Shown here in pieces: positions 2,456 to 45,785 of a stretch of DNA of 64,000 nt (position 1 is its first letter; each line of letters opens with the position of its first letter). A program made the position numbers and the translations under genes. Where the stretch lies: NCBI GenBank assembly GCA_043228905.1, contig JBHGNT010000018.1, positions 15,748,001 through 15,812,000 of the forward strand, read 5' to 3'. Origin of the DNA: Azolla caroliniana. Its lineage: Eukaryota > Plantae > Polypodiophyta. The notes below the pieces were generated by a model. The model worked only from the letters and a program-made list of their open reading frames with translations. It did no database searches and was not told the origin of the DNA.

Positions 2456-3577
2456 TGAGTTGACTAAGTAGGCCGACCGAATAACTTAGGTCTGGTCACG
2501 TAATGGTGAGATAGATTAAGTTGCCGATTAGTTGACGATACTGAGTTGACTCGCACTCCGTTGTGTCGGAATCGGCATCCATCATGAGATTATGATCGAG
2601 AGGGGTAGACACAGGTTTGCACTCGGTCATTCCAAACTTGTACAGAAGGTTGAGAATGTAGTGTCGTTGAGAAATCATTATTCCAACTAGTTTTCGAATT
2701 ACTTCAATGCCAACGAAGTAATGGAGCTCGTGCATGTCTTTCATTTCGAATCTGTTGGAAAGAAGTGATTTGACCTTGTCAATCTCGGTGAGATCCTTTC
2801 CTCTCATGACAAATCATCCACATAAAGGATGATGACAATCGGGTTATCCGACTCATTTCGGATGTACAGGGAAGTATTGTATTTTGACATTCGAAATCCG
2901 ATCTGATGAAGATATTGCGTGATCTTTGCGTGCCACACACCTGGTGCTTGTTTAAGGTCGTAGAGAGGCTTCTTGAGTCGGCACACGACGTTCAGATGAT
3001 TGTGCAATTCAAAACCAGGTGGTTGGATCATGTACACCTCCTCTTCCAATTTGCCTTGAAGAAAGGCGTTCTTGACGTCCACCTGGTGGAGGTGCCACAC
3101 AGTTCTCATCTTTGCCACTGGGGCAAAGGTCTCTTCGTAGTCTATGCCGTGCATTTGCGCGTATCCTTTCACAATGAGTCGTGCTTTAAAGCAATTTACG
3201 GAGCCGTCGACATTGTGTGTAAATCCACTTGTAGCCAAATTCTTTCTTGTTCGTCGTGTGAGGAACGAGATCCCATGTCTCGTTTTTGCATATGGCTTGC
3301 ATTTCTTCATTCATCGCATCGACCTATTGCGGCTCCTTTATGGCTTCGGAAAGCGTCTCTGGCTCTCGTATTGATGCTACCTTCATCATGAAGGCGTAAT
3401 GGTACGCCATATAATGGTTGTAGTGGAATCGACTTACGTGGTTCTTTTCACGGGTGGATCAGCGGAGTTTCTCGTTTGCGGATTCTAAGCCTTTCTTCGC
3501 TCCATTTGTCTGGATGATTGGGATGTCCGAATGCTAAGCATTTCTTAGCTCCATTTGTTCGGATGATTGGGATGTCC
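2456..3577 (-). mobile_element. Ty1/copia reverse transcriptase fragment
   Basis: KARLIVKGYAQ..GIDYEETFAPVAKM, DVKNAFLQG, LYVDDL, MKDMHELHYF, LIYLTIT (2496-3310). No RNase H or LTR before it joins the copia A leader. Confidence 0.9.
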
Positions 3578-4124
3578 ATTTTACTACGTATCAAGTTATG
3601 TGAGTATGAAACTTGAGAAGATGGGGAAACAAAATTGTAAGATATTCCACATAGACAGGACAACATCGAATCCACCAATATATAAGCAAACCTAGAACCC
3701 ATTACTTCATGTATGTATGTTTGGAGCACATAACGGTGTCGTGAAGATTTTCGACAACGGTGTGAAAATCACATAAAATGTACGAAATCGAGTGTAATTC
3801 ATATAAAACAATAATGAAGATGCTAATTTTAAATAAGTTTAATATCTTAGTACAAAAAGATCGAGGTCTTGAAGAGCTTTCCGATGCACTTTACTACATA
3901 AGAAACGGACATCGAAGTGTCAACTTATGTGGGTATGAAGTTTGCCAAAAGAAAAAGAAAAAAATAAAATTGTGAAATATCCCACATAGATAGGAAAGTT
4001 AAGGCCTTGGCTATATAAGCACATTGAGATCCCTTATTTTTCATTTGTGCTAAGAGCATTTTGACCACTTTGTCTAGATTGATAAATGTGGCCAAATTCC
4101 AAAAAACCGACTAGCAATAAAATG

Positions 4125-4330
4125 GAACCAGTCGGTAATGGATCGGAATTGACCGCAAATCAATTCGGAATCGGCCAGTAAGCAATTTGGAACCGGCCGA
4201 AAAGCAAACAAGAACTGGTCGGTAAGCAAAACCGGAATCGGTTACTAAGCAAACCAGAACTGGTCGGAAAGCAAACAGGAACCGGTCGATAAGCAAACCA
4301 GAATCGGGTGGTAATCAAATCGGAACCAGC
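4125..4330 (+). repeat. ~21-bp degenerate minisatellite within the LTR (mirror copy at ~5860-6075)
   Basis: Repeated GCAAACCGGAA(T/C)CGGTCGGTAA-like units. Confidence 0.8.
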
Positions 4331-5113
4331 GAAATCGACAATTAGATGGTGTCGAAAATCGGGCGAAACCAAAAACCGACGACCGGACGGGACTAGTGAT
4401 CGGGCGGAACCGGTGACCGAATGAGGCTGGACGTGGACCGGACGGATCAGTCGGGTCTATTGATCACGGTTCATGGTGTCTTAAAAATATTTGGTCCAAA
4501 AGCCTAATAGTATTTTGTGCATAAAAGAAAAAGATGTAAGCAAGACTCGAACTTAACACCTCCAAGATAGGAAGCAATAGGCTTACTATTAAGCGAAACC
4601 ATTTCTTTAGAGATTTTATTTTTATCATTATAACTTTACATGTAAATTCTCATACATGAGAGCTAAAATGAGTGACATGGTTATCATGCACCACATATAA
4701 TACATGAGCGCCAAATGGCAAACATGCATGTCTTGTACCTATAAAAGCGAGGAGGAAAAAGATGAAAGGGTAATGTAAATTTTTTATCAAGCAAGCTTTG
4801 TACTTTAAATCAAAATTAATATTAAGAAGAAAATTTGTTATCCTTTTGATGATATACCTTATTCTTAAATCTAAAGTCAAGAGTTCAATCTTAATCTCTC
4901 TCTCAATAAAAAATCAAGCATTCGATCTTATCTCAATCTCTCTCTCTTTCAATCTAACTTAAATCCTTTCTCACTTAAAGCTAGTAAAACAAGTTGAGTC
5001 CTTCCGGTCCAGAACCCCAACGGTTCCTCTTCACGATCTGCACATAGTGACGGATCTTCACGACATAATTATCTTAACAACCTTCACCATACACTTCAAA
5101 TGGATGGTTGATC

Positions 5114-5131
5114 TTCACGTCGGGTTCACCA
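5114..5131 (-). promoter_or_regulatory. Primer-binding site complementary to the 3' end of plant cytosolic tRNA-Trp
   Basis: Plus strand TTCACGTCGGGTTCACCA matches the plant tRNA-Trp(CCA) 3' end from memory; it lies 8 nt inside the right-arm LTR. Confidence 0.8.
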
Positions 5132-7373
5132 CTTAATTATGTCGTGAAGATCCGTCACTACGTGCGAATCGCGAGGTGGAATCGTCGGGGTTTTGGACCG
5201 AAAGGATTCAAAGTTGCATTAGCTTTGGCGCAAAAGGAATTAAGATAGATTGAACGAGAGAGAGATTGAAATAAGATAGAACGCTTGCATTTAGATTAAG
5301 AGATTAAGATTAAACGCTTGACTTTAGATTTGAAGAACAAGGTATATCATCAAAAGGATAACGAATTTTCCTCTTAATATTAATTTTGATATAAAGTACA
5401 AAGCTCTTAATAAAAAATTTCCATTATCCCCTTTCATCTTTTCCCTCCCCCTCTCTTTTATAGATGCCCTCATGCATTTGAGGGTACAAGACATGCATGT
5501 TTGCCATTTGGCGCTCATGTATTACATGTGGTGCATGATAACCATGTCACTCATTTTAGCTCTCATGTATGAGAATTTACATGTAAAGTTATAATGATAA
5601 TAATATAATCTCTAAAGAAATGGTTTCGCTTAATAGTAAGCCTATTGCTTCCTATCTTGGAGGTGTTAAGTTCGAGTCTTGCTTACATCTTTTTCTTTTA
5701 TGCACAAAATACTATTAGGCTTTTAGACCAAATATCTTTAAGACACCATGAACTACAATCAACCGACCCGACCGATCCGTCCGGTCCAGGTCCAGCCTCG
5801 TCCGGTCGCCGGTTATCGATTTCACCCAGTTTCCAACACCATCCGATTGTCAATTTCGCCGGTTTCGATTTGATTACTGGCCAGTTCCGGTTTGCTTACC
5901 AGTCGGTTCCGATTTGCTTACCGACCGATTCCGATTTGCTTACCGGTCGGTTCCTATTTGCTTTCCGGCCAGTTCGGGATTGCATACCGTCTGGTCCCGG
6001 TTTGCTTACCGGCCAGTTCCAATTTGGTTTCCAGCTTACCGGCCAATTACGGTTCCATTACCGACCGGTTCCATTTTATTGCCAGTTGATTTTTGGGAGT
6101 TTGGTGACATTCAATCATCTAGACAAAGTGGCCAAAGTGCTCTTAGCACAAATGAAAAATAAGGGATCTCAATGTGCTTATATAGCCAAGGCCTTAACTT
6201 TCCTATCTATGTGGGATATTTCACAATTTTATTTTTCTCTTTTTCTTTTGCAAAACTTCATACCCACATAAGTTGACACCTCGATGTCCGTTTCTTATGT
6301 AGTAAAGTGCATCGGAAAGCTCTTCAAGACCTCGATCTTTTTGTACTAAGATATTAAACTTACTTAAAATTAGTATATTCACTATTATTGTTTTATATGA
6401 ATCACACTCGATTTCGTACATTTTATGTGATTTTAACACCATTGCCGAAAATCTTCACGACAACGGTCAGGGTAATTAGGGTTGAACTATTTATACGGGC
6501 AGATGCGGTCGAACTACTTAGACGGATGAGTGTCGATGAACAATCGAAACAATTTTAGAACAATTCGAAACATACGGGTCAGGACATGATGGTTGGTAGA
6601 GACGCACAGATCGGTTAGGACGACTGTATGAACTTGTAAGGATCATGCAGCCAAATTGTAAGGACAGTCACATGCAATTAAAGTAAAGGTCATGTATGGA
6701 CGCATTCTACGTTCTGTTGCATACGTCCACCCATCACCTTTACTTTAGTTGCATGGCCTCTACGTTCAGTTGCATGCACCCACACATTACCTATACTTTA
6801 GTCACATACGATTGTCCTTACAATTCAGCCGCATGATCCTATCATCTGTAAAGTTCAGCCTGTGCATGACCCATATAGTCGTCCTAACCAACTCGACCAT
6901 TTCGATCGATCCATGCGTCGTGAACGGCCGATGCACAACGACTGACCGGTGCCTCTCGACCCAGACGTTCCGAACCATTCTAAACTCATTTTGAACAGTT
7001 CATCCACACTCGTTCGTTTAGGCAGTTCGGCCTCATTCGTCTGTCTTGATAGTTTGGCCCAAATCGCCCATATCGTTTTGTGCTCCAAACACACAGAAGC
7101 CATATCTCTCGAAAAACCCTAATTTTCCTTACGAAAGCCAATCTCTCAAAAACCCTAAATTTTCTTATCTATTAATCTCTTTAAGCCTAAACCTTTGTAA
7201 TTCCAATCTTGGGATAGATTGTAATTTTCTTTTCTTTGCTAATGAAAATTACTAAATTTTCTCATTTCCGTTAATTCTTAAAGTATAAACGCACGAATCT
7301 AATATCCTCTGGTCTGAGGCCTTAAGATCTTGCCTCAAGTTCACGTGTCTTTGTCGTATTTTCGCGACATCTT

Positions 7374-7391
7374 TGGTGAACCTTATGTGAA
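7374..7391 (+). promoter_or_regulatory. Degenerate tRNA-Trp PBS (second copy 10189-10206)
   Basis: TGGTGAACCTTATGTGAA, 15/18 identical to TGGTGAACCCGACGTGAA, 4 nt after the LTR-terminal CA. Confidence 0.75.
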
Positions 7392-10300
7392 ACGAGGCAA
7401 AAGGAGGATATCTCATGGAGGTATATAGATACAAAGAGCCGAAGAGATGCAACCTATACGAGTTCGACCAATGGGTATCATCATTAAAGACCCACCAAAC
7501 TGTCGTGCATGCGTTCATTGAGTTCGAGAGTCTCTTTGCTCAACTCTCAGAGCGGGATCGAAGATTGATGGGGGTGAATAAAGTCCTAATGTTTGTGAAA
7601 TCGATAAATCTGAAGGAAAGGAAGGCCATTGGAATTCGACTTGAGGATGACGATGGTGCAAATGGCCTAATCGAAAATTGATGGGAATCTTGTCGACAAC
7701 ATCATGTTCTACGAGGGATAATCAAAGGAGGATGAGATGTGGCAACACGCCACCACCAAAGGAAGAGAGCTCAAAGAAAGCAGATTCAAAGACACTCAAC
7801 ATAGAAGCTTTGATGAGAGAAGTATTCGAGAACTTAAAGGCACAAGTCAATGCTAACGAGGAGCTTAAAATGGAACGAAAATTGAGGCAAACGGTTATGA
7901 AGGAAGAAAAGACCTCCCAACAAATACGAAGAAATGATACAACCAATATGAAGGCCTAGGTTCTGTAAGACAGTACCACGAGAGAAGGTGTGGAACAAGC
8001 TACCTTCTCAACATACGGAGGAACGATGGTCAAGAGAAGGGCCGAAGACTAAAGAGCGGAATATGTCGCTTTGAGAGTGGACAAGCGTTTCGGAACACAT
8101 GTTGTGTCTAAAACATCAAGTGATTAAGAAGTAAGCATGAGCAAAGCATGCGTGATCAAGGGAGATAAAAGGTGTGAGGCCGACGTGATTGATGAGATAG
8201 CCACGAAAAATGACATTGAGTTAGAGGTGGCTATGGACGAGTGGATGGCGGATGGCCGTGTTGAGACTTTCTCCACACTTGTTCCAAAGACTTTGGCAGT
8301 TGTGCCCGCGAGCCAACATAAGACCGGAGAGATGGAAGGTGGTAGCGAGGAAGCAAAGGTTGAAGTTGATACATACGACGAAGAGGGAAGCATAATTGCG
8401 GCTTGCTTGATTAAGAGGGTCAATGAGTACGGGGCCCATGAGCCAACATAAGACTGGAGAGAAGGAAGGTGGAGACGAGGAAGCAAAGGTCAAAGGTAAT
8501 GCATATGATGAAGAGGTCAAACAAAGCACAATGGTGCACGATGAGGACCAAACAAACGAAGTGGATTCGAAGGGCGTTTCCTGGGATTTGAAGATCGAAC
8601 CATCGATGGTCAACTCTCACATGAGAGCATACAATGAAAAAGGAAGAAGTGGAAAACATGCAATCTAGTTGTCTAAGGGCCTAAATGTGAGCATGTACTT
8701 AACGCATGGGCTAACAAAGACAAGCTTGGATTGACGAAAGAAGGAAGATTGAAGTGTCTTGTCCACGAAGATGATCGAAATGAAAGTGACACATACATGG
8801 TGCATTATGGTTATGCTTGGGAAAGGTGGAAAAGGCCACGACAATCGATCGTGGCGATGCAAAGCTCGGACAAAGGATTTGCTAGTTTGGATGGTCTCCA
8901 TCGCTATGGTGGAAAGAATGGTCGCAATGGTATTGGAAGAGATCTAACGAGCCAATGAGTTAGTTCAAGGTCAATGTATATAATAGATAGTTAGGTTATG
9001 AAGAAAGGAATATATTCGGACAAGGATTAAAATTTTCAACTAGGCGCACCAGTGGATGTGCCGGTTTGGTGGCGGTGAATGTCGTGTGATTCTTTACACG
9101 CGATATGAAAGTAATGAAATAATTATTTTAGATTAGCTTAATGGCTTGGTACGAAAAGATGGAGGTCATCAAGAGCTTATGAACACATTTTACTACATAT
9201 GAAACGGACAACTTCGTATCAAGTTATGTGAGTATGAAGCTTGAGAAGATGGGGAAACAAAACTGTAAGATATTCCACATAGACAGGACAACATCGGATC
9301 CACCAATATATAAGGAGACCTAGAACCCATTACTTCATATCTGTGTGTTTGGAGCACAGAATGGTCAGGGTAATTCGGGCCGAACTGTTTAGACGGGTGG
9401 ATGCGACCAAACTGTCTAGACGGACGAGTGTCGATGAACAATCGAAACAATTTTGGAACAGTTCGAAATGTCTAGGTTAGGACGCGCGGGTCGATAAAGA
9501 CGCACGGATTGGTCCGTACGCACGGATCAGTCGAGACAACTATATGAACTTGTAAGGATCATCATGCGGACGAATTGTAAGGACGGTCGTATGCAACTAA
9601 AGTAAAGGTCATGTATGGACGCATTCTACGTTCTGTTGCATGCGTCCACACATGACCTTTACTTTAGTTGCATGCGTCCACACATGACCTTTACTTTAGT
9701 TGCATGGCCTCTACATTCAGTTGCATGCGTCCACACATTACCTTTACTTTAGTCAATGCGACCGTCCTTACAATTCTGCCGCATGATCCAACCATTTGTA
9801 AAGTTTAACCCATGCATGACCCGAACAATCGTCCTAACTGACCCACTCGTTTCGACTGATCTGTGCATTACGACCAACCCTAATGTTCCGAACCGTTCTA
9901 AAATCATTTATAGCAATTCATCCACACTCATTCGTTTTGGCAGTTCGGCCGCATCCGTCCGTCCGGATAGTGCGACCTAAATCACCCATATCGTTTTGTG
10001 CTCCAAACACACAAATATAAACTAATGGGTTTTGGGTCTGCTTATATAATGCTAGATCCGATGTTATCCTATCTAAGTGGGATATCTAATTCTTAATGTT
10101 TAAACGCAAGAATCTAATATCCTTTGGTCTAAGGCCTTAAGGTCCTGCCTCAAGTTCACGTGTCTTTGTCGTATTTTCGCGACATCTTTGGTGAACCTTA
10201 TGTGAAACGAGGCGAAAGAAGGATATCTCATGGAGGTATATAGATACAAAGAGCCGAAGAGATGCAGCCTATACGAGTTCGACCAATGGGTATCATCATT

Positions 10301-10697
10301 AAAGACCCACCAAACTATCGTGCATGCGTTCATTGAGTTCGAGAGTCTTGTTGCTCAACTCTCAGAGCGGGATCAAAGATTGATGGGGGTGAATAAAGTC
10401 CTAATGTTCGTGAAATCGATAAATCTGAAGGAAAGGAAGGCCATTGGAATTCGTCTTGAGGATGACGATGGTGCAAATGGCCTAATCGAAAATTGATGGG
10501 AATCTTGTCGACAACATCATGTTCTACGAGGGACAATCAAAGGAGGATGAGATGTGGCAACATGCCACCACCAAAGGAAGAGAGCTCAAAGAGAGAAAAT
10601 TCAAAGACACTCAAACCTAGAAGCTTTGGTGAGAGAAGTACTCGAGAACTTAAAGGCACAAGTTGATACTCACGAGGAGCTTAAAATGGGGCGAAAG

Positions 10698-11835
10698 TCG
10701 GTACACTCTTCTCTTGCAAGATTCATGCTTGCCTGCTCACAAATGAATAGGATCTCCTTTGCACTCGTAGCTACGGCAAATCAGTCCTTTTAATCAGGAA
10801 TCTTCTTGGGTTCGACATTGTTACCGACACCTTTGTCCTTCTTGAGGTGTCGACGCTCCTTTTGGAAATGTCCAAGTTTCCCGTAGTAGAAGCATGTCAG
10901 CTTTCCTTTGGCACTTGGATCTAGCTTGGGACTTGTCTCTTCTTTGTGAACTTCTTTGTCGGTTCCTTACTCTACCGGTATGGGACTGGAACAAGACACA
11001 CTTGTCCTTCCTTCTTGTCTCCTCGTTCAAGATGCTTGTCGTTACATCTTGAAGAGACAAGTTCTCTTCTTGACACAAGGTACTGAGACTCACCACCAGA
11101 TTCTCCCCATTGTCCGGCAAGGTAGATAGTAGTAGGATGGCCTGCATTGCATCATCAAGAGGAAACTTGGTTGCAACAAGTTGGTTGACATACCTAATGA
11201 ATGTGCTTACATGCTCGACTATGCTTTCTTCATCCCTGTATTTCAGTCTCACAATCTTTCTCATCAAAGATGTTTTGTTGAGGACATTCTTCCTCTCATA
11301 TAGACATGACAACTTTTGTTAAAGGACACTTACATCGACGCACTATCTGATTGTGGCCACCGCCTTTCTATTCAAAAGTTTTCATTCGGACTCTAATACC
11401 CAAGTGTGTATTTCTGCTTTGTTGATGGGCTCGTATAAGTCTTTGACTATGAGAACGTCTTCCATCTTTATCTTCCAATTTGCATACTTCTTAGAGTTCA
11501 AAACTATCATAACTAGGAAACCACTCACACATCAAGTTCTAATACCAGTTTGACGGGATCTGATATAATATCTATGTTAAAGATATGCCGAAACACAATG
11601 AACAAGATATACATTGCACATAGTTTTACGTGGAAACCCTAAAACGAGAAAAACCATGAGAGAACAAATCTTCCACTATACAATGGAGAATACAAAGGAG
11701 ACAATATACAACACTCTCTGTCTGCACAAAGTGTATCAGCCTTGTAGGGCTCTTGGTGTCTAAGCTCACTCATCTACGACGTTGCTCCCACTATCATGCA
11801 CTCTCTCTTCTCTCTCTATAACTCAGAGCTACAAG
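10698..11835 (-). mobile_element. Decayed copia 5' fragment (partial LTR, Met PBS, gag), related to the copia at 59371+
   Basis: LYERKNVLNKTSLMRKIVRLKYRD aligns with LYERKNALNRTSLMRKIVNLKYRD at ~60270. PBS TGGTATTAGAAC at ~11537-11548. LTR motif ACGTGGAAACCCT is shared. Confidence 0.85.
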
Positions 11836-22827: not shown

Positions 22828-22927
22828 NNNNNNNNNNNNNNNNNNNNNNNNNNNNNNNNNNNNNNNNNNNNNNNNNNNNNNNNNNNNNNNNNNNNNNNNN
22901 NNNNNNNNNNNNNNNNNNNNNNNNNNN
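22828..22927. other. Assembly gap (100 N)
   Basis: Run of n characters. Confidence 0.99.
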
Positions 22928-23811: not shown

Positions 23812-26800
23812 GTGGCCCATGTGACAAATAATAGACTTAGGATGAGTTTATGGAATTGTAACGGTGCACTTTGGACACACCCTGGCCGTCTAGAGGAGAT
23901 TTTGAGGGTATCTGATATACTTTTTTTGGTAGAAACACATCAAAGTCCAAATCGAGGATTACCACGAGTTGATGGTTTTCGTTGGGAATCTGTCTTTAGA
24001 CAAACCTCACGTCGACACACTACTAGAGGGTCTGGAGGGGTTGCGATATTATTTCGGAGAGAGATACATAGTAGGATAGAAATACTAAAGAAAGACCCAG
24101 CAGCCCGTTTTATGTGGGTGAAAGTACTCACTAGCAAAGATCAGGTGATATTTATTGCCATTTGTTACTTCCCCCCGAAAGGATCTCGGTATAATATGGC
24201 TGGAGTGGCGAGTATAGTTGATGAAGGAACGCCACATGGGCCTTCTCCATACGAACCTTTATCGGATGACATAATCCGATATTCTTCTCAAGGGGAAGTC
24301 TTCCTTGTAGGAGATTTCAATGCGAGAACCCAATCCCGCCAATGCACAATATTTCAGATGGATAGAAACCTAGAAATGGTGAATGTCGACCCTTTAGCCT
24401 TAGGCATAACACGTACATCAAAAGATCAAGGTGCGGACGCCACAAGCTTTGGCCATCATCTGCTTGAACTTGGAAGCCGACACCAGATGATCATATATAA
24501 TGGCTTAGCCAAGTGGCCGGGCTCGGAAGAGCTCACATGTTTCCCACATGGAGGAGGGGAAAGCACAGTTGATTACCTAATAGGACGCCCTGAAGCTACC
24601 CACATGGTTAGCTCCTTCCGGGTGGCCCCATGCCTCATTGGCGCAGACCATAGCTTCCTATACTTTGAGCTAAAATGTGACGCCTCCCACGCCACCAACT
24701 CTAGTAAACCAACCCATCGCACTATAATACATTTCACGCATGAGCTCGCTGACATCTATTCTCGACATGTTCAAGCGCATCTCTCCTCTTTTGATTCTTC
24801 CTTGCCTTTAGAGCACCTCACTACAGAACTCACACACATCCTCCACTCAGCAGCAACTAGTAGCTTCCCATACACGAAAGACTCCAATCATAGTAGAGTT
24901 GGGTCTATGCCACAGAACAAGTGGTATGATGAGGATTGTAGAGAGTTGTATAGACAACTTAAAGTATCGCGGCTTAGTGGTACTATTTCCTCAGTACAGG
25001 CTCGCAAAGAGATGCGCAAGATGACACGTCGTAAAAGATGGGCTTGGGAAGCATCTCAATATTGGGAACTCTACCATATGCTCATGAGTAGGGATTGTGC
25101 CCTCGCATGGAAGAGGCTACGGGAACCGAGACCACAAACACCCATCGAGGATCCCAATATTTGGCACACATATATTGAGAGACTCTACCATGTCCCGAAC
25201 CAACCACCCATTCCAATGCCCTCCACACCTCGACCTACCATGGGGACACTTTTCACGACCTCTAGGGTCACGAAGGTCATCAAAAAATTACAACATAGGA
25301 AATCCATGGACCACACAGGATTGTGTGCCGAGCACATCATATATGCTCGAGAGTGCCTAGCCCCCCTTCTCGCTCTAATCTTCAACCGCGCCCTCGCCGA
25401 GGGTTTTCCACCACAATGGGCCATGAACACAGTGGCCCCTATACATAAAGGAGGGGACTCAATGGACCCAAATACATATAGGACCGTTATGATAGGTCAT
25501 ACGCTCGCTAAACTATATGGTGCAGTAATGGAAGCGGAGCTCAGTGATTATATGGAAACATTAAGTCTTCGAGCACCTGAGCAAGCTGGCTTTAGACGAG
25601 CCTTCTCCACTATTGACCATATCTTCACACTCAGGTGCTTAATTGACCAGACAAAGGCTCGTAAGAAGAAACTATATTGTTGCTTTGTGGACTTTCGCAA
25701 GGCCTTTGACACGGTTCCTAGGGAAAGGTTGTTTGATAGACTTAAGAGCTTGGAGATACCAGATGACATGATCTGGGCCATTTATGCCCTATATGAGCAA
25801 GTCTCTGGGTGTGTAAGATGCCCAGGTGGCCTATCCGATTGTTTCACTAGCACCATTGGTGTAAAACAGGGTTGCCCCCTATCACCGACTCTTTTTGGGA
25901 TCTACATTGATGAGATCACTGATTTTATTGCTCGTAAGGGAGGCAAGGGAGTAGCTATTGGGGAGACGCAAGTTAGTCTCTTACTCTACGCAGACGACAT
26001 TGTCTTGCTCTCAGAGTCGGAACACGACCTACAAAAGCATCTTAATGCCCTGGATGACTTTTGTACACAACGAGGACTGGTAGTGAATTTAGCGAAAACT
26101 AAAGTCCTTATCTTTCATACATCGTCCCGAGTTAGGAGTCAATGTCACCTAATCCTCTCTCATAAACCAGTTGAGGTAGTGGGATCGTATGTATACTTGG
26201 GAGTCACCTTTAGTGCTCGCTCAGGTAAATTCTCGATGACCCAGGCAGCCAAAGATAGGCTAACGAGAGGGTATGCATCCCTCTCACTCTTAGAGAGACA
26301 ATGCCATCAGGCATACTTTCAAGAGCCACGGACTAAGGGATGGCTTTTTGACTCATTAGTGACCCCGTCCCTCATGTATGCATCAGTAGTATGGGCTCCA
26401 GGTTTACCATCTTTCATGTGGACGCAATTAGAGAGACCTTTAGTGACGATGTTATCACGTCAACTCCGAAGCAAATCGACGGTACCACATGACATTATTA
26501 GAGCTGAGTTCAGTCTACCCCCGATGTTAGTAGAAGCACTCTTTCAAGTGGTAGTTTTTATTCATCGGATACATAGCCAACCACAAGATAGGATATCCCG
26601 TCGAGCCTTTGAGGCGTCTCGATCTTTATATGTGTCTGGCGACACTAGCTCTTGGTATAGCATCGTGGTGAGTTGGCTCCGTGCGAACGGCATAGACATT
26701 AATAACCTACCTCCCCTTAAGTACAACCATGGGACTGATCAAACTTTAATCTCTCACGAAGATCGTAATAAAGTGATACGCCAAGAAATATGGCAAATTT

Positions 26801-27555
26801 ACACTCGATACAAATGGATCACCCCACGAGAACCACTCCCATCTAAAATGGTGTACTATAAGGAACACTTCTTGCGCTTCTCTACGCTAGGTTTTATTAC
26901 ACGACCAAGATATTTAGATACATTCTTATCAAATGCACTAAGGGTGGCCATTGGACAACTTAGGATATCATCTCACCAACTTGAGATTGAGAATGGTCGG
27001 GCTAATAGAGTCCCTAGAGAGGAAAGGTTATGTAGGTTATGCCACATAGAGATAGAGGATGAGTATCACTTCACATGCAAATGCCCAACTTATGCCGAGA
27101 TACGAGCGGAATACCAAGACATACTAGGACCCTCTCCCACCCTCTCCAAACTATTAGATACCCCGAATGTAAAGAGACTAGGTAGATATATCTTAGACCT
27201 AAAACAACATAGGGAGAATAAATTACAAAGTGCTAACGATAACCCTCTTAGTATTCATCACCATGTAACTAGTGTAATTTTTCAGGAACAAGGGGAGACG
27301 ATGAATGTGGATACACTTACGCCGCTCGGCCTCTCCCTTGAGGAAGCAGAAATGCAAAGAACAACGAAACGCCCTCGAATGTTGGGCTTCAAAACAAGTC
27401 AACGTGGAGTAGACAAGATTAAGAAGATAAGGGAACGTGAGCTACGTCGACTAGAAGCTATGGTTGGGGTACCTCTTACATGGGGACCACGGCCCACATC
27501 CACATCGCAACCCTTTGACCTTCCGCTTCTCTTCGAGAGACTTGGATGGAAATGA
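23812..27555 (+). CDS. LINE B ORF2: APE endonuclease, reverse transcriptase and C-terminal CCHC domain
   Basis: WNCNG, LVETH, GDFNAR, VDY, ADH; FVDFRKAFD, GVKQGCPLSPTLF, LLYADD; LRISSHQLEIENGR..RLCRLC..EDEYHFTCKC. No stops. First in-frame ATG is ~23842. Confidence 0.95.
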   Translation: MAHVTNNRLRMSLWNCNGALWTHPGRLEEILRVSDILFLVETHQSPNRGLPRVDGFRWESVFRQTSRRHTTRGSGGVAILFRREIHSRIEILKKDPAARFMWVKVLTSKDQVIFIAICYFPPKGSRYNMAGVASIVDEGTPHGPSPYEPLSDDIIRYSSQGEVFLVGDFNARTQSRQCTIFQMDRNLEMVNVDPLALGITRTSKDQGADATSFGHHLLELGSRHQMIIYNGLAKWPGSEELTCFPHGGGESTVDYLIGRPEATHMVSSFRVAPCLIGADHSFLYFELKCDASHATNSSKPTHRTIIHFTHELADIYSRHVQAHLSSFDSSLPLEHLTTELTHILHSAATSSFPYTKDSNHSRVGSMPQNKWYDEDCRELYRQLKVSRLSGTISSVQARKEMRKMTRRKRWAWEASQYWELYHMLMSRDCALAWKRLREPRPQTPIEDPNIWHTYIERLYHVPNQPPIPMPSTPRPTMGTLFTTSRVTKVIKKLQHRKSMDHTGLCAEHIIYARECLAPLLALIFNRALAEGFPPQWAMNTVAPIHKGGDSMDPNTYRTVMIGHTLAKLYGAVMEAELSDYMETLSLRAPEQAGFRRAFSTIDHIFTLRCLIDQTKARKKKLYCCFVDFRKAFDTVPRERLFDRLKSLEIPDDMIWAIYALYEQVSGCVRCPGGLSDCFTSTIGVKQGCPLSPTLFGIYIDEITDFIARKGGKGVAIGETQVSLLLYADDIVLLSESEHDLQKHLNALDDFCTQRGLVVNLAKTKVLIFHTSSRVRSQCHLILSHKPVEVVGSYVYLGVTFSARSGKFSMTQAAKDRLTRGYASLSLLERQCHQAYFQEPRTKGWLFDSLVTPSLMYASVVWAPGLPSFMWTQLERPLVTMLSRQLRSKSTVPHDIIRAEFSLPPMLVEALFQVVVFIHRIHSQPQDRISRRAFEASRSLYVSGDTSSWYSIVVSWLRANGIDINNLPPLKYNHGTDQTLISHEDRNKVIRQEIWQIYTRYKWITPREPLPSKMVYYKEHFLRFSTLGFITRPRYLDTFLSNALRVAIGQLRISSHQLEIENGRANRVPREERLCRLCHIEIEDEYHFTCKCPTYAEIRAEYQDILGPSPTLSKLLDTPNVKRLGRYILDLKQHRENKLQSANDNPLSIHHHVTSVIFQEQGETMNVDTLTPLGLSLEEAEMQRTTKRPRMLGFKTSQRGVDKIKKIRERELRRLEAMVGVPLTWGPRPTSTSQPFDLPLLFERLGWK

Positions 27556-33522: not shown

Positions 33523-35883
33523 TTAAGAACATCTTTGCATAAGATACGAATCATAGTTTGTAAACTCCGGAAACTCTTTCATTGATTTAAGCTTTTCAAA
33601 TATGTCAACACACTGTTTATATTTATAACCTTTTCTAGAAAACATTTCCAGTAACTTGACGCATTCTTGTCGCGAGGGTCGAAGACCTCTATCGAGCATT
33701 TGTTGGCACAATTGCCAAGCATGGTCTACCCGCCCTTCATTTCCTAAAGACAAAATCAATGGCATATAGGTCTCACAATCAGCAACAAGACCAACATCTT
33801 CCATATCTTTAGATAGCTTGAACGCCATTGCCCAATCACCTATACTAGCATATCCTCCTATAAGTTGGCTATATGTGCTTACATTAGGGGCACATCCACC
33901 AGCAACCATTTTATTGAACACATCATGTGCAACTTTCATATCCCCCTTTATGCACAATACATTGATAAGATGATTACATGTATTGAGAGTTGGCATCAGC
34001 CTAGCTTGACTACTACTCATATCTTCGAAAAAGCGTAGTGCTTGATATAAAGAACCAAATCTGGTAAGGCAAAGGAGAATACAATCATAAGCAATGCAAC
34101 CAGGAGTATATCCAAGCTCTCCCATTGCATAAAAGATTTTCAGAGCTCCATCCAAATTGCCATTCTCGGCTAGTTTCTTAACAAGATCATTCAGTTTGTG
34201 AACGTCTGGTTTAAGTTCAAGGGTCACCAATTCTTTCAAGAAATCATGAATCTGATCCATTGCACCTATTTTGAGGAGGTTTTCCATCAATGAATCAATC
34301 AGCATAGTATTAGATGATGCTTTTTTCTTTGCGAATGCTAACACTAGTTTGCAAGCAGAGTCAATACTGTCTCCTTGTATGAGCCACTCCATAGCTTTAC
34401 TATAAGCTACTTCAGGTTCAATATGACCTTTTGAAGCCATATCCTCAACGAGATGCTCAAGATCAGAAATCCTCCCTTTTGGACCGAATGCATTTATGAG
34501 TGTAGAATATGTATGTGTTTCAGCCTCTAAGCCAAACTTTGAGATTTCAACATAAACTTTCAAGGCTAAATCTAATTCTCCAGCCTTGCCGAGAGAGTAT
34601 ATAAGTGAATTACACGTAGATAAACTCATGGATAGCTTCTTATCAATCAGTTCTGTGAAGAAAACATAAGCTGAAGGAATATCGCCAGTTCTTAGATGTG
34701 CTTGGATGAGCGCAGCATACGTATAACCATCAGGTTTTAATCCACATTCACACATTTCTTTATACAAGGTATTCGCCATGTGGACATTCTTTTTCCTCCC
34801 GAAAAGATTGATCAATATGTTATAACCAGTCCGATCCAAATAGCAACCATTCATTCTCATTTCAAAGTAAATCTCTCGAGCTTTATCAGTATACCCATGC
34901 TTTGCAAGTATATCAATGATACAGCTATAAGTCACTATACCAGGTTCCCATTCATTTTCTCGCATTCAATAATAGATTTCCAATACCTTCTGTGGTTGTT
35001 GAGCTTTGCTAAATCCTCTTATGAGAGTGCTTAAGGTAACCTGGTCAGGTTCACATCCATCATTTTCCATTTTCTCTTGCAAAAACTTCAAAGATATGGC
35101 ATTCTCTTTAGAGCTGGCAAGAATGCTCGCCAAAGCATTATATGATCTCGTAGTGTGCTTATATCCAGGTTGATTCCTTACCCATTCAAAAATCTCTATA
35201 CAGCAGCGAGGTTCTTGGATACCTTTGAGGATATGGCAAACATGGAAAGGATCAATTTGTGCTATTTTCATCACAAATTCTTGCTTCGTCATATCGTTCC
35301 ATCCTTTCTTCACAATAGAGGATGCAATCTCCCTGAGCAGTTTGCTTTCTTCCATTCTCTGCTTCCTCGAAAACTCGGCAGAAGAAACGGAAACAGAAGA
35401 ATGGAAAGGAAGAGAAGAGGAAGACGGAGAATCTTCGTACCTGCAATCACTGCTGCTCTGCCATAGCCATGCATCCTGGAATATCTTGACAGGGTCGTCT
35501 TCATTCTCGTCTCTGCCATGGGATAAAGTAGGGTTTGCAAGGATGCGACACTTCGAGGTAATCAAGTTTGCAATGTCGTCAAGGTCCATTTCTTTGGAAG
35601 AAGAAGAAGAAGAAGAAGAAGAAGAAGAGCAAGAAGCTTCTACAGCTTCTTCCATGGTGGTTAGTACAGAGCTGTCTGCAGTAGAATAGAATCTGGGGAG
35701 GGAAGGCCATATCCACCGCTGCCCTAAGGAGGAGGCCTGCAAGGCTCTGCTACTCATCAAGTGCCACAGAGAGACAGAGAGAGAGAGCGTACAGTGATGA
35801 TGAATGATGGTGGTGAGAGAGCTAAGGAGGAGTGCAAATGGGCGTGACGTATCATTCATTCTGGAGCATGGCCGGCCGGACAT
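33523..35883 (-). pseudogene. P-class pentatricopeptide repeat gene, intronless, interrupted by one in-frame TGA (34966-34968)
   Basis: The two listed ORFs are contiguous and in the same frame (..VLEIYY*MRENEWEPGIVTYS..). Many 35-aa PPR motifs; EIFEWVRNQPGYKHTTRSYN; presequence-like MSSRALQ...PRFYST. Confidence 0.85.
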
Positions 35884-40834: not shown

Positions 40835-42405
40835 TGTGGCGTAAACGCTCATGCGAGGGTCTTGGACTAGGGTGGAGATAAGGGCTAAGAGGGCGCAAAT
40901 GTTAATAATTAGGGAATTAATTAAGGGTTAATTAGTGTCTAATTATATGAGTAGTTAATCACGTATGTGATTAAGCAGTGGAAGGCTATGTGATATGTGT
41001 GTGTATGTGCGTGAGAGAAAGAGAGGAAGCACAATTATGAACAATAAGACAAAATGGGGGATGATTAACACAAGTGTAGCTTAAAGAACTCTTGCTTATA
41101 TTAAAAGACATCAAGTTACAAAAAATACCTATAATGAGGTATATATACATTTCATGTGCAAGGGTGCACATGTGTGAAGAGGATATAAGTACAAGGATGT
41201 AAGACCTATATTAAATGTACTTGGAGTGGAGGATCTAGAATGTATCTCACTTAAGTACAAAGTCGTATTTAAGGATTTAAGGTCAACACACTAACTAGAT
41301 TCTATTTATGTAACTACTAAGTAAAAAATTTGACAAAATAACTAAACCTAGTTGGCTCGTCAGAGTTGAAAGCTCTTAAGAGTGGAAAACCTCTCTAGGG
41401 TCGAAAGTTCTACAAAGTAAAATGTTCTCTAGAGTTGAAACCTTTAAAGAGTTGAAAGATCCCTAGACTCGAAGGAAAGGCAAAGTTGAAGGGAAGATAG
41501 AGTTGAAGGGAGGTGCAATTGTTAACCACTAAACAAGAAACAAAGACGAAAGGAGGGGGAGGGTTGAAGCTTCCAGTGATGGCAAGTCTAGTGGGCGTCG
41601 AGACCGCAACTACCTTTGATGGCTATGATGCCTCAAATCGGGGTAGAGTTCTCAGGCCACTCTGTCTTCCCTTCAAACGACTCACATGCGAGCTTGTCAG
41701 ACCTCTCCTTGGAGCCTCCACAAAGTAAAACAAGCTCCCCAATAAACTTGAAGCAGGAAAACGAAGGAGTAGACCAAAAATGCCCAAAGCAAAGTAGAAA
41801 ACGAAGAGGAAGAAGTCACCCAAAAACCGCTAGAAACCTCAAAATATGCACTCTTCCCCTTCTTTTATAATGTGGTGTGCATGTGTTCCTTTGTGTCACC
41901 CTTTTAGAACACCCCTTTTTGCATGCATGTAGCTAAGCCAAACCCCCCTTTTAGCACACCCTTTTAAGCACACATGTAGCTAAGACAATATGTGAAATGC
42001 ACATAGGAGACTCCAAACCAATGTACATAACTTCTTACTTCTTGCTCAATTTATAGTCGATACAAAGGTACCCATTTAGCTACACGCATGCTAAAAAGGG
42101 TGTGCTAAAAGGGTGGGTTGGCTTAGCTACATGCATTCTAAAAAGGGTGTGCTAAAAGGGTGGCACAAATGAACACATGCACACCACAATAAGAAGAGGG
42201 CGCCTAATTGCATTTAATGCAATTATTCCCCTTTTCCTTCGTAAAGAAAGGGAGGAATAATTACTCATTAAATCACAATGCATGGATTCGAAATCTACAC
42301 CTTTATTTATTATAATTATATTTTCAAAATTTTATATTTACATTGTCACACACACCCTTTGTTTTTTCCCTTCTTTTCACATTTTTCACCTTTGGCCATG
42401 CCACA
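40835..42405. mobile_element. Probable solo LTR
   Basis: TGTGGCG...TGCCACA termini; flanks ACAT/TCAT (3 of 4 match); internal AGAGTTGAA repeats. Confidence 0.55.
41871..42188. mobile_element. 318-bp foldback element, TGT...ACA termini, 4-bp TSD ATAA
   Basis: TGTGGTGTGCATGTGTTC...GAACACATGCACACCACA with ~112-bp arms; ATAA at 41867-41870 and 42189-42192. Confidence 0.85.
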
Positions 42406-43520: not shown

Positions 43521-45785
43521 ATGGCCCTCCCACAGAGGTCACCATTGAAGCTCATCCATTTGCAGGAATTCCCTTCTCTGTTGCGATGGTATGGAAATAA
43601 CAAGGATTTGTTCAATGCCATGATTGTCCACCATGATATATGTACCAGAGATATAGAGAGTGATCCGTACATTGGATCGTCCCTTATCGAGATGTATCTT
43701 AAATGTCAAGCGATAAGCGAGGCTCATCTCTTGTTTTTCACCTCACCGTCACTACATAGTTTGTTCACATGGAATCTCCTCATTAGGTCATATAGAACCT
43801 CAGGTGAAGACTTAATGGCATTACAATGCTTACACCGGATGCATGGAGAGGGTTTTATTCCAGAAAAATATGCTTTCGTGAACCTTATCTCCTCGTGTAT
43901 CAATCTCAATGATTTGTCAGGAATTTGTCGGATCCATGCTTGTATTGTGAAAGGTCCTCATGAATGTGATTTGGTGGTTGGAAATGCTCTTATCAATGCA
44001 TATGCCAAATGTGGTACGATAGGTGATGCCTGCACTGTATTTGATAACATGGTAGAACATGACTCTTTCTCGTGGGATACACTAATTGTAGCTCATGTGA
44101 ACTCCAAGCTTTATGATGAAGCTTTTCATCTCTTTCAAGGAGAGAAGCTTAAAGGTGTGCTTCCCACGCGGATAACGTACATGGCTATTATAGAAGCTTG
44201 CACCAATAACAGGCCTAGAACCATTATGACCACATTGGCTTGTGTCTTCGGTAGTGATCACAAGAATGATGTTGTTGTCGGAACTTCAATAATGAACATG
44301 TTTACCAAGATGGATTGTGGATCGGATTCGTGGAATATGTTTTGTAGCATGCCAGAGCGAAATTTACACACATGGAACGGAATTATTGCGGCAACTTGCT
44401 CTCAACTTCATCAAACAAACAGTTTGATTGATCTATACAACCAGATGTTGAGTGAGGGAGTGCTTCCAAATGAACTCACATTCATTCGCTTGCTTTCCTC
44501 ATGCACGAGCCCAAAATTGATAACACTAGGTAGGTACATTCATGCTAGCATCATGGCCAGTGAATTTGTTTCAAATATTGCAGTTCATAATGCCCTAATA
44601 AACATGTACAATAAATGTTGTGAACTAGAAGAAGCTCAAAGAGTCTTTGACTTAATAGTAGAGAAGAATACAGTTTCTTGGACTACTATGATTGTTACTT
44701 GTGTGGAACATGGACAAAGCATACTTGCCATTGGAAACTTCCATCAAATGTTGTATGAAGGCATTTTACCTGACAAGGTGATGCTAATCAGCATTCTCAA
44801 TGCATATGCAAGCCTACATTCTCTTTCTCGAGCCCGAAGAATGCACACTCTCATTCATGGCACGGATCTTGATTCCAATATAGAAGTTGGATCTTCTCTT
44901 TGCGTTATGTATGGAAAATATGGGAGTTTCAAGGATGCATTGAGAGTGTTTGACAAGCTTTGTAATGCAGATGTAAAGGTATGGAGTTCCCTGATAAGTG
45001 CTTATGCTCAGCACAACCATGCAGAGAAAGCCATACAATTTTTCTGTCAAATGCAGCAGGAAAGTGTGTTGCCAAATAAGGTGACCTTTTTCAGTCTATT
45101 TGATGCGTGTGCTCAAAGTGGTGCTATATCTGAAGGTAGGAGATTGCATATTCACATATTATCTAGTGGTTATGAAATTGATGCACATATAGAGACTGCT
45201 CTTGTAGACATGTATGGAAAATGTGGCAGCCTCGAAGAATCAACAAGAATATTCAAAGATGCATTCAAGCAAGACATTATATTGTTAACCACCATGATGG
45301 CATCATATGCTATCAACAACAAGGTCAAGCATGCGCTTGATCTATTTGATAAGGTGCGCCATACTAGATTAAAACCAGACGAAGTGACTTTTATCAATGT
45401 TTTATCTATGTGTAGTCATTCTGGCATGATTGAACAAGGACGCTTGTTTTTCACTTCCATGAGCCATGATTATAATATCACACCAAATATTTACCATTAC
45501 AGTTGCATGATTGACATGCTTGGAAGAGCTGGATGCCTCAAGGAAGCCGAGGATATGATAAATAATATGCCATGTCCTGCAACTTCATTGCAATGGATAA
45601 CCTTGCTTAGTTCTTGTCGGCAAAAACTCGATATCGAACGAGGAGAGCGGGCTGCACATCAGATATTCTTGCTCGATCCAAAGAACCCAATACCATATGT
45701 TGAGCTTTCTAACATCTATGGTTCGCTGAATAGAGATGCTGATGCTATAGAGATTATGCATAAGATGAAAGCGAGAGTTTTGTAA
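43521..45785 (+). CDS. PLS-class PPR protein with E1/E2 extension (organellar RNA-editing factor type), no DYW domain in frame
   Basis: Alternating P/L/S motifs (GNALINAYAKCGTI, TALVDMYGKCGSLEE, HYSCMIDMLGRAGCLKEAE); E domain W.TLLSSCR...YVELSNIY; 754 aa without stops. Confidence 0.95.
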   Translation: MALPQRSPLKLIHLQEFPSLLRWYGNNKDLFNAMIVHHDICTRDIESDPYIGSSLIEMYLKCQAISEAHLLFFTSPSLHSLFTWNLLIRSYRTSGEDLMALQCLHRMHGEGFIPEKYAFVNLISSCINLNDLSGICRIHACIVKGPHECDLVVGNALINAYAKCGTIGDACTVFDNMVEHDSFSWDTLIVAHVNSKLYDEAFHLFQGEKLKGVLPTRITYMAIIEACTNNRPRTIMTTLACVFGSDHKNDVVVGTSIMNMFTKMDCGSDSWNMFCSMPERNLHTWNGIIAATCSQLHQTNSLIDLYNQMLSEGVLPNELTFIRLLSSCTSPKLITLGRYIHASIMASEFVSNIAVHNALINMYNKCCELEEAQRVFDLIVEKNTVSWTTMIVTCVEHGQSILAIGNFHQMLYEGILPDKVMLISILNAYASLHSLSRARRMHTLIHGTDLDSNIEVGSSLCVMYGKYGSFKDALRVFDKLCNADVKVWSSLISAYAQHNHAEKAIQFFCQMQQESVLPNKVTFFSLFDACAQSGAISEGRRLHIHILSSGYEIDAHIETALVDMYGKCGSLEESTRIFKDAFKQDIILLTTMMASYAINNKVKHALDLFDKVRHTRLKPDEVTFINVLSMCSHSGMIEQGRLFFTSMSHDYNITPNIYHYSCMIDMLGRAGCLKEAEDMINNMPCPATSLQWITLLSSCRQKLDIERGERAAHQIFLLDPKNPIPYVELSNIYGSLNRDADAIEIMHKMKARVL

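Follow-up and report, generated by a model that had tools for sequence, protein, structure and literature searches.

An integrated pair of inverted LTRs in Azolla caroliniana, best read as a fossil of aberrant reverse transcription

A stretch of 64,000 nt from Azolla caroliniana, analysed here as a whole and referred to as the window, carries at positions 3733-6466 a unit in which two complete LTRs face each other across 74 bp (5066-5139), the same U3 start, TGTCGTGAAGAT, forming the outer tip on both sides. With its LTRs inverted rather than direct, the unit is not a canonical LTR retrotransposon, and it entered its site in a single insertion. It is best read as the one-off fossil of a copying accident in a Ty3/gypsy family, presumably primed by tRNA-Trp, and not as a new kind of mobile element. 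The explanation that we favour, with a probability of roughly 0.6, is that reverse transcription itself produced a head-to-head joint between two strong-stop-type LTR modules and that the product was integrated once, through its two U3 tips.

Architecture and insertion site

The unit, the host LTR that it interrupts and an uninterrupted paralogue of this host LTR are made up of the following features, in window coordinates.

3583-3736, plus strand: left flank, host LTR copy A (a related Trp-type element), 92.9% identical to 9211-9365
3733-3736: ACGG, left copy of the 4-bp target-site duplication; the paralogous empty site has a single ATGG (9361-9364)
3737-5065, plus strand: left LTR, complete, 1329 bp, from U3 tip TGTCGTGAAGAT to U5 end ATCTTCACGACA, both ends being family LTR ends in the metagenome loci
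4145-4319, plus strand: 22-bp tandem repeats in the left LTR, mirrored in the right LTR at 5837-6034; the arms diverge most in this block
5066-5071, plus strand: TAATTA, the first 6 nt of the family's 8-nt LTR-to-PBS spacer TAATTAAG, on the left LTR; the last 2 nt (AG) are absent
5072-5113, plus strand: probable gypsy integrase gene fragment, 42 nt, from nucleotide matches to relatives, a conserved motif and tblastn
5114-5131, minus strand: primer-binding site (PBS), 18 nt, TGGTGAACCCGACGTGAA, part of the right LTR module; exact and single in the window
5132-5139, minus strand: complete spacer TAATTAAG (8 nt), linking the right LTR to its PBS, the same as in related loci
5140-6462, minus strand: right LTR, inverted, 1323 bp, U3 tip outermost (right end)
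6463-6466: ACGG, right copy of the target-site duplication, matching 3733-3736
6467-7369, plus strand: right flank, remainder of host LTR copy A; a decayed PBS comes next (7374-7391)
9080-10184, plus strand: host LTR copy B, uninterrupted paralogue, with the empty site at 9361-9364

When the unit and one ACGG are taken away, 3580-3736 and 6467-6620 become colinear with the paralogue at 9208-9520, in which the site reads ATGG (9361-9364), and no host sequence lies between the arms. A single 4-bp duplication, a colinear empty-site paralogue in the same window and the lack of host DNA between the arms together identify the unit as the product of one insertion. All four LTR ends in the unit match the tips TGTCGTGAAGAT and ATCTTCACGACA exactly, the same tips being found in related loci, and each LTR is bounded by a 12-bp terminal inverted repeat.

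The arms agree at 88% of aligned positions (1135 of 1285; 82 gap columns) and differ by several indels of up to 33 bp. Their divergence is a mosaic: two blocks differ by 4-5%, but the repeat block and the last 165 bp by 18-28%. Such a pattern requires that the arms decayed very unevenly or stem from two different parental templates. Judging by the 4-5% divergence of its best-kept blocks, the copy is old. It contains only spurious open reading frames and no transposase gene; its centre (5066-5139) has neither a leader sequence nor a purine tract such as the GGTGGGGGTGGA that relatives carry before the 3′ LTR. Since no 3′ R or purine tract is present in the right orientation, the copy in its present form cannot replicate. 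A tRNA-like stretch within the LTRs is called by neither ARAGORN nor Rfam. Rfam returned only a sub-threshold match to a long-hairpin microRNA (54 bits, the cut-off being 200), a hit that echoes the palindromic structure.

Most of this anatomy had been proposed by a sequence-only reading of the window, whose two complete facing LTRs with the same end at both outer tips, TAATTA next to both inner LTR ends, single ACGG duplication (3733-3736 and 6463-6466) and clean interruption of a related LTR are all borne out, the last by the colinear empty-site paralogue. The 2.7-kb palindrome that it described does form inverted arms within one unit, although the measured arm divergence makes it an imperfect one. 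It had rightly placed one 18-nt PBS on the minus strand of the 74-bp centre and seen no purine tract there, but it overlooked the 42-nt integrase fragment, as well as the 12-bp terminal inverted repeat of each LTR.

The parent family and the centre of the unit

Related loci were drawn from 81 plant contigs obtained in a metagenome scan, which are collapsed repeat assemblies. The family that emerges has the order LTR, 8-nt spacer TAATTAAG, 18-nt primer site, gag-pol, G-rich purine tract and LTR. The spacer followed by the exact 18-nt PBS is common to 18 related loci, a leader sequence comes after the PBS in normal relatives, and the purine tract GGTGGGGGTGGA stands directly 5′ of the 3′ LTRs in 7 loci. 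These relatives have direct LTRs and a DDE integrase, and one of them, L010, is an autonomous member encoding reverse transcriptase, RNase H and integrase. From such sequence correspondences, the arms of the unit are assigned to a tRNA-primed Ty3/gypsy LTR family. Its PBS, which we take to be of the tRNA-Trp type, has a single exact match in the window, where chance would be expected to give 0.01. The complement of these 18 nt is an abundant plant 3′-CCA tRNA fragment matching gypsy PBSs (PMC5846777). All 7 of the LTR tips that abut non-element sequence in the related loci are flanked by NCGT, and the ACGG at the unit fits this 4-bp, CpG-centred target of the family.

Read from left to right, the centre consists of 6 of the 8 spacer bases, the 42-nt piece, the 18-nt primer-site copy and a full spacer. 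The 42-nt piece reads TIHFKWMVDL in the sense direction on the plus strand, and is thus antisense to the PBS and the right LTR. At the nucleotide level it matches two of the related loci at 16/16 (L038) and 18/19 (L069) positions, and its motif is kept in 14 loci. The motif at 5072-5113 is the top tblastn match in the window (E 2.9e-4) and occurs only once there. In five of the related loci, L010 among them, the same stretch of integrase is found some 4.6-4.8 kb downstream of the PBS. Taken together, these matches identify the piece as a probable fragment of a gypsy integrase gene, an assignment that extends over 42 nt only. Two other sources were considered and rejected. A leader or a decayed purine tract does not agree with the 42 nt, given that the leader of the relatives differs, their tract is G-rich and the match of the 42 nt is to integrase. 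A copia integrase present in the window, with the motif FKWMVE, agrees at only 5 of 10 residues, where the gypsy relatives agree at 9 of 10. The filler has no other occurrence in the 64-kb window, which argues against local replication slippage.

The two breakpoints that flank this filler fall at particular places in the replication cycle. That of the right module lies exactly at the boundary of the 18-nt PBS, which is the end of plus-strand strong-stop DNA, and that of the left module leaves the spacer 2 nt incomplete, at the same distance from the point where minus-strand DNA starts. For breaks placed at random in the 5.7-kb internal region, each of these coincidences would have a chance of about 1 in 1000.

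A probable miscopied cDNA and competing routes

These termini suggest how the unit may have been made. The right module, an LTR with TAATTAAG and an 18-nt PBS copy, has exactly the content of plus-strand strong-stop DNA, and the left module, an LTR with TAATTA, has that of an LTR whose inner end reaches within 2 nt of the minus-strand start; a copy of 42 nt of the integrase gene joins the two head-to-head. Most probably, reverse transcriptase switched template twice inside the particle. In the first, strong-stop DNA would prime on a plus-sense integrase template, replacing the second strand transfer; in the second, synthesis would jump to a plus-sense LTR strand and run off at the U3 end of that strand. 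The resulting duplex, with a U3 tip at either end, could then be inserted by the family integrase into the LTR of a related element, with the usual 4-bp CpG-centred duplication. The enzyme should be able to use such a substrate, since in this family the 12 bp at the U3 tip recur at the U5 tip. What we infer from the product is that the joints arose by template switching and not by ligation, in which order the steps took place, and by which route the second strand was synthesised. The sequence-only reading had likewise favoured an aberrant cDNA, in which an LTR with its PBS was fused to an inverted, unprocessed LTR end, and the spacer and PBS breakpoints lend support to this idea.

Ligation is the first of two unlikely alternatives of similar standing. 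Incomplete reverse-transcription products, one LTR module ending in the PBS copy and another in an untrimmed spacer, would have lain free in the nucleus and been joined head-to-head by host end-joining, with the 42-nt filler between them, before integration. The joints do sit at natural DNA ends, the loss of 2 nt (AG) and the insertion of a short filler are typical of such repair, and there is precedent in two-LTR circles, whose junction nucleotides have been ascribed to end-joining (PMC7197481). However, strong-stop modules do not normally come loose from the long minus strand, a pair of isolated LTR-only duplexes, each with an exact U3 tip, would be unexpected as free products, and integrase would still have to bind the product after repair.

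The second, equally improbable, places the inversion after integration: a normal or internally deleted element at ACGG would later have had one LTR inverted, by recombination between its inverted 12-bp tips or by fold-back replication. The terminal inverted repeat of each LTR means that a flip in place would preserve both tips and duplication, and the integrase piece is in the sense direction relative to the left LTR, as it would be in an internally deleted plus-strand element. Nevertheless, at least three events are needed, namely a 4.7-kb deletion beginning 6 nt past the LTR, the loss of everything beyond 42 nt of integrase, and the placement of an inverted LTR, spacer and PBS with its break exactly at the 18-nt PBS boundary. 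The PBS would, moreover, adjoin the wrong LTR, and the filler has no source in the window.

Far less probable is a mobile family of LTR-derived foldbacks that move as DNA, either Ginger-like or mobilised by a gypsy integrase. The TGT...ACA tips, the 4-bp duplication and the long inverted arms are of the expected kind, and a small foldback with a 4-bp duplication does exist in the window (41867-42192), but it has no PBS and no sequence in common with the unit. The LTR family itself ordinarily has such tips, a duplication of this length and a CpG target, so that the Ginger-type element once offered as the other possible reading is not needed; the arms are complete LTRs, no transposase is encoded, and the asymmetric centre, with its one-sided PBS and integrase filler, resembles an accident rather than a conserved design. 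No second copy of the unit was found in the window or among the 81 related loci. Least credible is an assembly artefact from a chimeric or fold-back read, for although palindromes are known from some long-read libraries, the arms differ at 12% of aligned sites in addition to their indels, the centre is asymmetric, the duplication is exact, an empty-site paralogue exists and the sole gap in the window lies elsewhere (22828-22927).

Related systems and possible consequences

Three known systems with inverted ends or inverted duplications bear comparison with the unit. Ginger DNA transposons have TGT tips, a 4-bp duplication and a gypsy-like integrase as transposase; the unit shares the tips, the duplication and the inverted termini, but it lacks a transposase gene, its arms are whole LTRs of a tRNA-primed family with a PBS, and its tips and duplication are inherited from that family. 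DIRS elements are, like the unit, retroelements bearing inverted terminal repeats, but they use a tyrosine recombinase and are not known to make a duplication, whereas the unit has a duplication, is without a coding region or internal complementary region, and has normal relatives with direct LTRs and a DDE integrase. Mu killer of maize, an inverted duplication of a transposon whose hairpin RNA silences the family, resembles the unit as an inverted duplicate of a transposon end; it differs in its origin from a DNA transposon and in its proven silencing effect.

Two further parallels come from reverse transcription itself. Complex LTR retrotransposon insertions generated by template switching have been described as direct LTR-internal-LTR-internal-LTR arrays (Sabot and Schulman 2007, PMC1950507). 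As in those insertions, a single round of reverse transcription would have yielded something abnormal, which an ordinary integrase then inserted with a single target-site duplication, and the marks of a complex insertion found here are one duplication with an empty site, and inner joints at the termini of replication intermediates. In contrast to the arrays, the LTRs of the unit are inverted, nearly all of the internal sequence is gone and the breakpoints mark strong-stop termini; the word 'inverted' is absent from that paper. Mutually inverted LTRs, as in the unit, are known from the 'inversion circles' that arise by autointegration in retroviruses, Ty1 and Arabidopsis SISYPHUS, which are dead-end circles with processed CA ends joined to an internal target (PMC7197481). 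The unit, unlike these circles, is a linear product integrated in a chromosome, and 6 and 8 bases of spacer are still attached to its inner LTR ends, so the inner joints were not made by integrase and autointegration was rejected as their source. No description of an integrated inverted-LTR pair was found in the literature searched, a weak absence given its thin coverage of older work on retrovirus DNA rearrangements.

Integrated fossils that preserve the termini of reverse-transcription intermediates are rare. On the best reading, the unit would record a failed second strand transfer and indicate that the integrase of a presumably tRNA-Trp-primed gypsy family accepts a substrate with two U3 ends. 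A hairpin some 1.2 kb long is a physically plausible fold for a read-through transcript, and such RNA, if produced, would be directed against the unit's own family. A more speculative extension, to which we give little credence, is that head-to-head LTR units are a recurrent product in this lineage, favoured by three features of the family, namely 12-bp tips that are identical, a long spacer with the palindrome TAATTA at its core, and a U3 end for which trimming is unnecessary. On this view, such units, once integrated, would behave as hairpin-RNA loci and silence the family they derive from, as a retrotransposon equivalent of Mu killer. For annotation, LTR finders that demand direct repeats miss or mislabel such units.

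An inverted LTR pair inserted as one unit

A genuine but imperfect palindrome occupies 3733-6466, in which two complete LTRs stand face to face across 74 bp. The coordinates confirm this arrangement as the sequence-only reading had described it, with the same LTR end at both outer termini, TAATTA inward of both arms and one primer-binding site (PBS) in the centre. Its parts are as follows.

3733-3736, left copy of the ACGG duplication
3737-5065, + strand, left LTR, 1329 bp
5066-5139, centre between the LTRs, 74 bp
5140-6462, - strand, right LTR, 1323 bp
6463-6466, right copy of the ACGG duplication

The U3 start of the LTR (TGTCGTGAAGAT) forms the outer tip on both sides, and the U5 end (ATCTTCACGACA), followed by TAATTA, is the inner end of both arms, so that each LTR carries a 12-bp terminal inverted repeat. 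At 5114-5131 on the minus strand, separated from the right LTR by 8 nt, is the 18-nt PBS, TGGTGAACCCGACGTGAA; no other exact match to it occurs in the window, with 0.01 expected by chance. Its complement is presumably the 3′ end of cytosolic tRNA-Trp. The same complement is an abundant plant 3′-CCA tRNA fragment matching gypsy primer sites in Cryptomeria (PMC5846777). Both arms also contain, in antisense, a tRNA-like stretch (4535-4600 and 5622-5687; with a T-arm-like GTTCGAGTC), which is perfectly conserved from arm to arm and receives no call from ARAGORN and none from Rfam.

When the window is compared with itself, the flanks of the unit prove to be parts of an LTR (copy A) that has a second, uninterrupted copy (copy B, 9080-10184) 5.6 kb downstream, with the following matches.

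3583-3737 against 9211-9365, 93%
6462-7095 against 9360-10013, 73%
7272-7880 against 10087-10696, 95%

Once the unit and one ACGG are removed, the flanks are colinear with copy B across the joint, and ATGG occurs once in copy B (9361-9364) where ACGG occurs twice in copy A, which bears out the proposed single 4-bp target-site duplication and clean interruption of a related LTR. Two independent insertions, each with its own duplication, are excluded because the arms enclose no host sequence and neither is flanked by a duplication of its own; the unit is one insertion. An assembly artefact is very unlikely, given that 150 of the 1285 sites aligned between the arms are mismatched, with 82 further gap columns, the centre is asymmetric, the ACGG duplication is exact and the window's only gap is at 22828-22927.

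The centre of the unit and its relatives

Read inward from the right LTR, the centre consists of the full 8-nt spacer between LTR end and PBS, then exactly the 18-nt primer site, beyond which there is neither leader nor purine tract, in keeping with the earlier remark that no clear polypurine tract was visible. The 42 nt that follow (5113 down to 5072), here called the filler, represent part of an integrase gene in reverse complement. Translated from the + strand, 5086-5115 gives TIHFKWMVDL, a motif conserved in 14 related loci (9/10 residues against locus L079). Its place is at the beginning of the integrase core, some 4.6-4.8 kb downstream from the PBS. The filler matches L038 at 16/16 and L069 at 18/19 nucleotides, and a 24-residue query finds its top tblastn hit of the window here (E 2.9e-4). 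The motif was not found elsewhere in the window's six frames; a copia look-alike, FKWMVE at 56800-56817, was rejected as the source of the filler, being a poorer fit (5/10 residues). Beyond the filler come TAATTA and then the left LTR, inverted relative to the right.

The related loci come from a scan of metagenome contigs in one set of assemblies, which looked for the primer site preceded, at a distance of 2-10 nt, by an LTR end. The resulting 81 loci are plant DNA (one, L068, bears a glycosyltransferase family 17 gene) and represent a broad group of Trp-primed gypsy elements, including a subgroup whose LTR ends, spacer and primer site match the arms (TAATTAAG exactly in 18 loci, close variants in 9). 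Downstream of the primer site these relatives have a leader (AGAGGCGG...) and then gag, a G-rich purine tract, GGTGGGGGTGGA, directly precedes the 3′ LTRs in 7 loci, and one autonomous member (L010) has reverse transcriptase, RNase H and integrase domains. The LTR of L011 comes closest: it shares 89% identity with the right arm over that arm's first 272 bp, and 86% with the left arm over the corresponding stretch. NCGT flanks were found at 7/7 LTR tips abutting non-element DNA; together with the tips of the relatives, they make TGT tips, a 4-bp duplication and a CpG-centred target ordinary properties of the family.

The 18 loci that keep the 8-nt spacer fall among L005-L080. Integrated ends stop at CA, so the U5 end in this family has to shed 8 nt, an unusually long tail; spacers of other Trp-primed subgroups are 2-6 nt. 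At L041:2690-2745, U3 tips of two different subfamilies stand tip to tip, separated by ACGT alone, the arrangement that would result had one element landed precisely at the boundary of another.

Origin of the unit

The breakpoints were interpreted by the standard model for reverse transcription of LTR elements. In that model, synthesis of plus-strand strong-stop DNA begins at the U3 tip, immediately downstream of the purine tract, and stops once 18 nt of the tRNA primer have been copied. The molecule thus contains the LTR, the spacer and an 18-nt primer-site copy, a content to which the right module corresponds exactly. Minus-strand DNA begins with the complement of the spacer, so that a finished LTR naturally terminates, on its inner side, in untrimmed spacer; the left module has such an end, 2 nt short. 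Each outer end is an exact U3 tip, the point where a plus-strand template ends. If breaks fell at random in an internal region of 5.7 kb, either position would be reached about once in 1000; on this improbability, we conclude that the unit was assembled from replication intermediates before integration.

In the simplest path, the 3′ end of a strong-stop molecule, instead of making the second transfer, would have begun to copy a plus-sense integrase template, switched after 42 nt onto a plus-sense LTR strand at the spacer, and been extended to the U3 end of that strand. If each strand were then extended on the other, the product would be a blunt duplex with a U3 tip at either end. Integrase could use it owing to the 12 bp common to U3 and U5 tips, the U3 end being without the 8-nt tail that the U5 end has to shed. 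The idea of an aberrant cDNA integrated as one unit through two identical ends is thereby supported, and refined by the breakpoints and the filler.

Ligation of free intermediates by host end-joining would yield the same anatomy as the strong-stop path, and is an unlikely but tenable origin. Similarly improbable is a rearrangement after insertion, with one LTR flipped via the 12-bp inverted tips or copied by fold-back replication: it would retain the ACGG duplication, but needs several further events, leaves the coincidence of breakpoints with strong-stop termini unexplained and has no source of filler within the window. Autointegration makes inverted LTR arrangements in plant particles, as circles joined via processed CA ends (PMC7197481), whereas the inner joints of the unit keep 6 and 8 spacer bases, and it was rejected. 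A mobile, Ginger-like foldback family, the alternative first suggested, is highly improbable, as no feature requires it, tips, duplication and target being ordinary for the LTR family, and no second copy occurs in the window or the 81 loci.

A 326-bp foldback at 41867-42192 (TGTGGTG...CACCACA tips, ATAA on both sides) has no PBS and no similarity to the unit, and looks MITE-like. Three-LTR complexes under one duplication have been ascribed to template switching by Sabot and Schulman, but these are direct arrays rather than an inverted pair (PMC1950507). We found no description of an integrated inverted LTR pair in a literature coverage that mostly excludes older papers on retrovirus DNA rearrangement.

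Divergence of the arms and the host LTR

Divergence between the arms is uneven along the LTR, as listed here in left-arm coordinates.

3737-4080, about 4%
4081-4140, 18%
4141-4420 (22-bp repeats), 28%
4421-4745, about 5%
4746-4900, 7%
4901-5065, 18%

CpG transitions account for 41 of the 150 differences. Two genomes are packaged per particle, and the mosaic may reflect either two somewhat different templates or faster decay of repeats, microsatellite-like tracts and CpGs. Plant LTRs change at ~1.3e-8 per site per year, a rate that is not fern-specific; with 4-5% divergence, it suggests that the insertion is roughly 2 million years old or older. Normal replication is impossible for the unit, and a read-through transcript would be predicted to fold into a hairpin pairing 1176 of the 1329 left-arm bases with the right arm.

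The host LTR holds an imperfect inner palindrome of its own (~820 bp, 69-78% identity; 9268-10087 in copy B, about 3640-3736 plus 6467-7270 in copy A), into one arm of which the unit inserted; a conserved U3/TATA block occurs twice, inverted, in this LTR and once in the metagenome relatives. After each of copies A and B comes the same decayed PBS (7374, 10189) with a gag start, 95% identical, and a purine tract precedes copy B (about 9062-9079), so that the host is an LTR-internal-LTR-internal array sharing an LTR. A minus-strand copia gag cuts the array (3583-10700) off near 10800, and a 49-bp tandem duplication (3479-3576, 88% identical), absent from copy B, lies just upstream of the conserved part of copy A. 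Further along, the window contains a LINE ORF with endonuclease and reverse transcriptase domains, a pair of PPR genes, of which one has an E motif, and two copia elements (together 23812-27555, 33523-35883, 43521-45785, 55279-57768 and 60473-63256).
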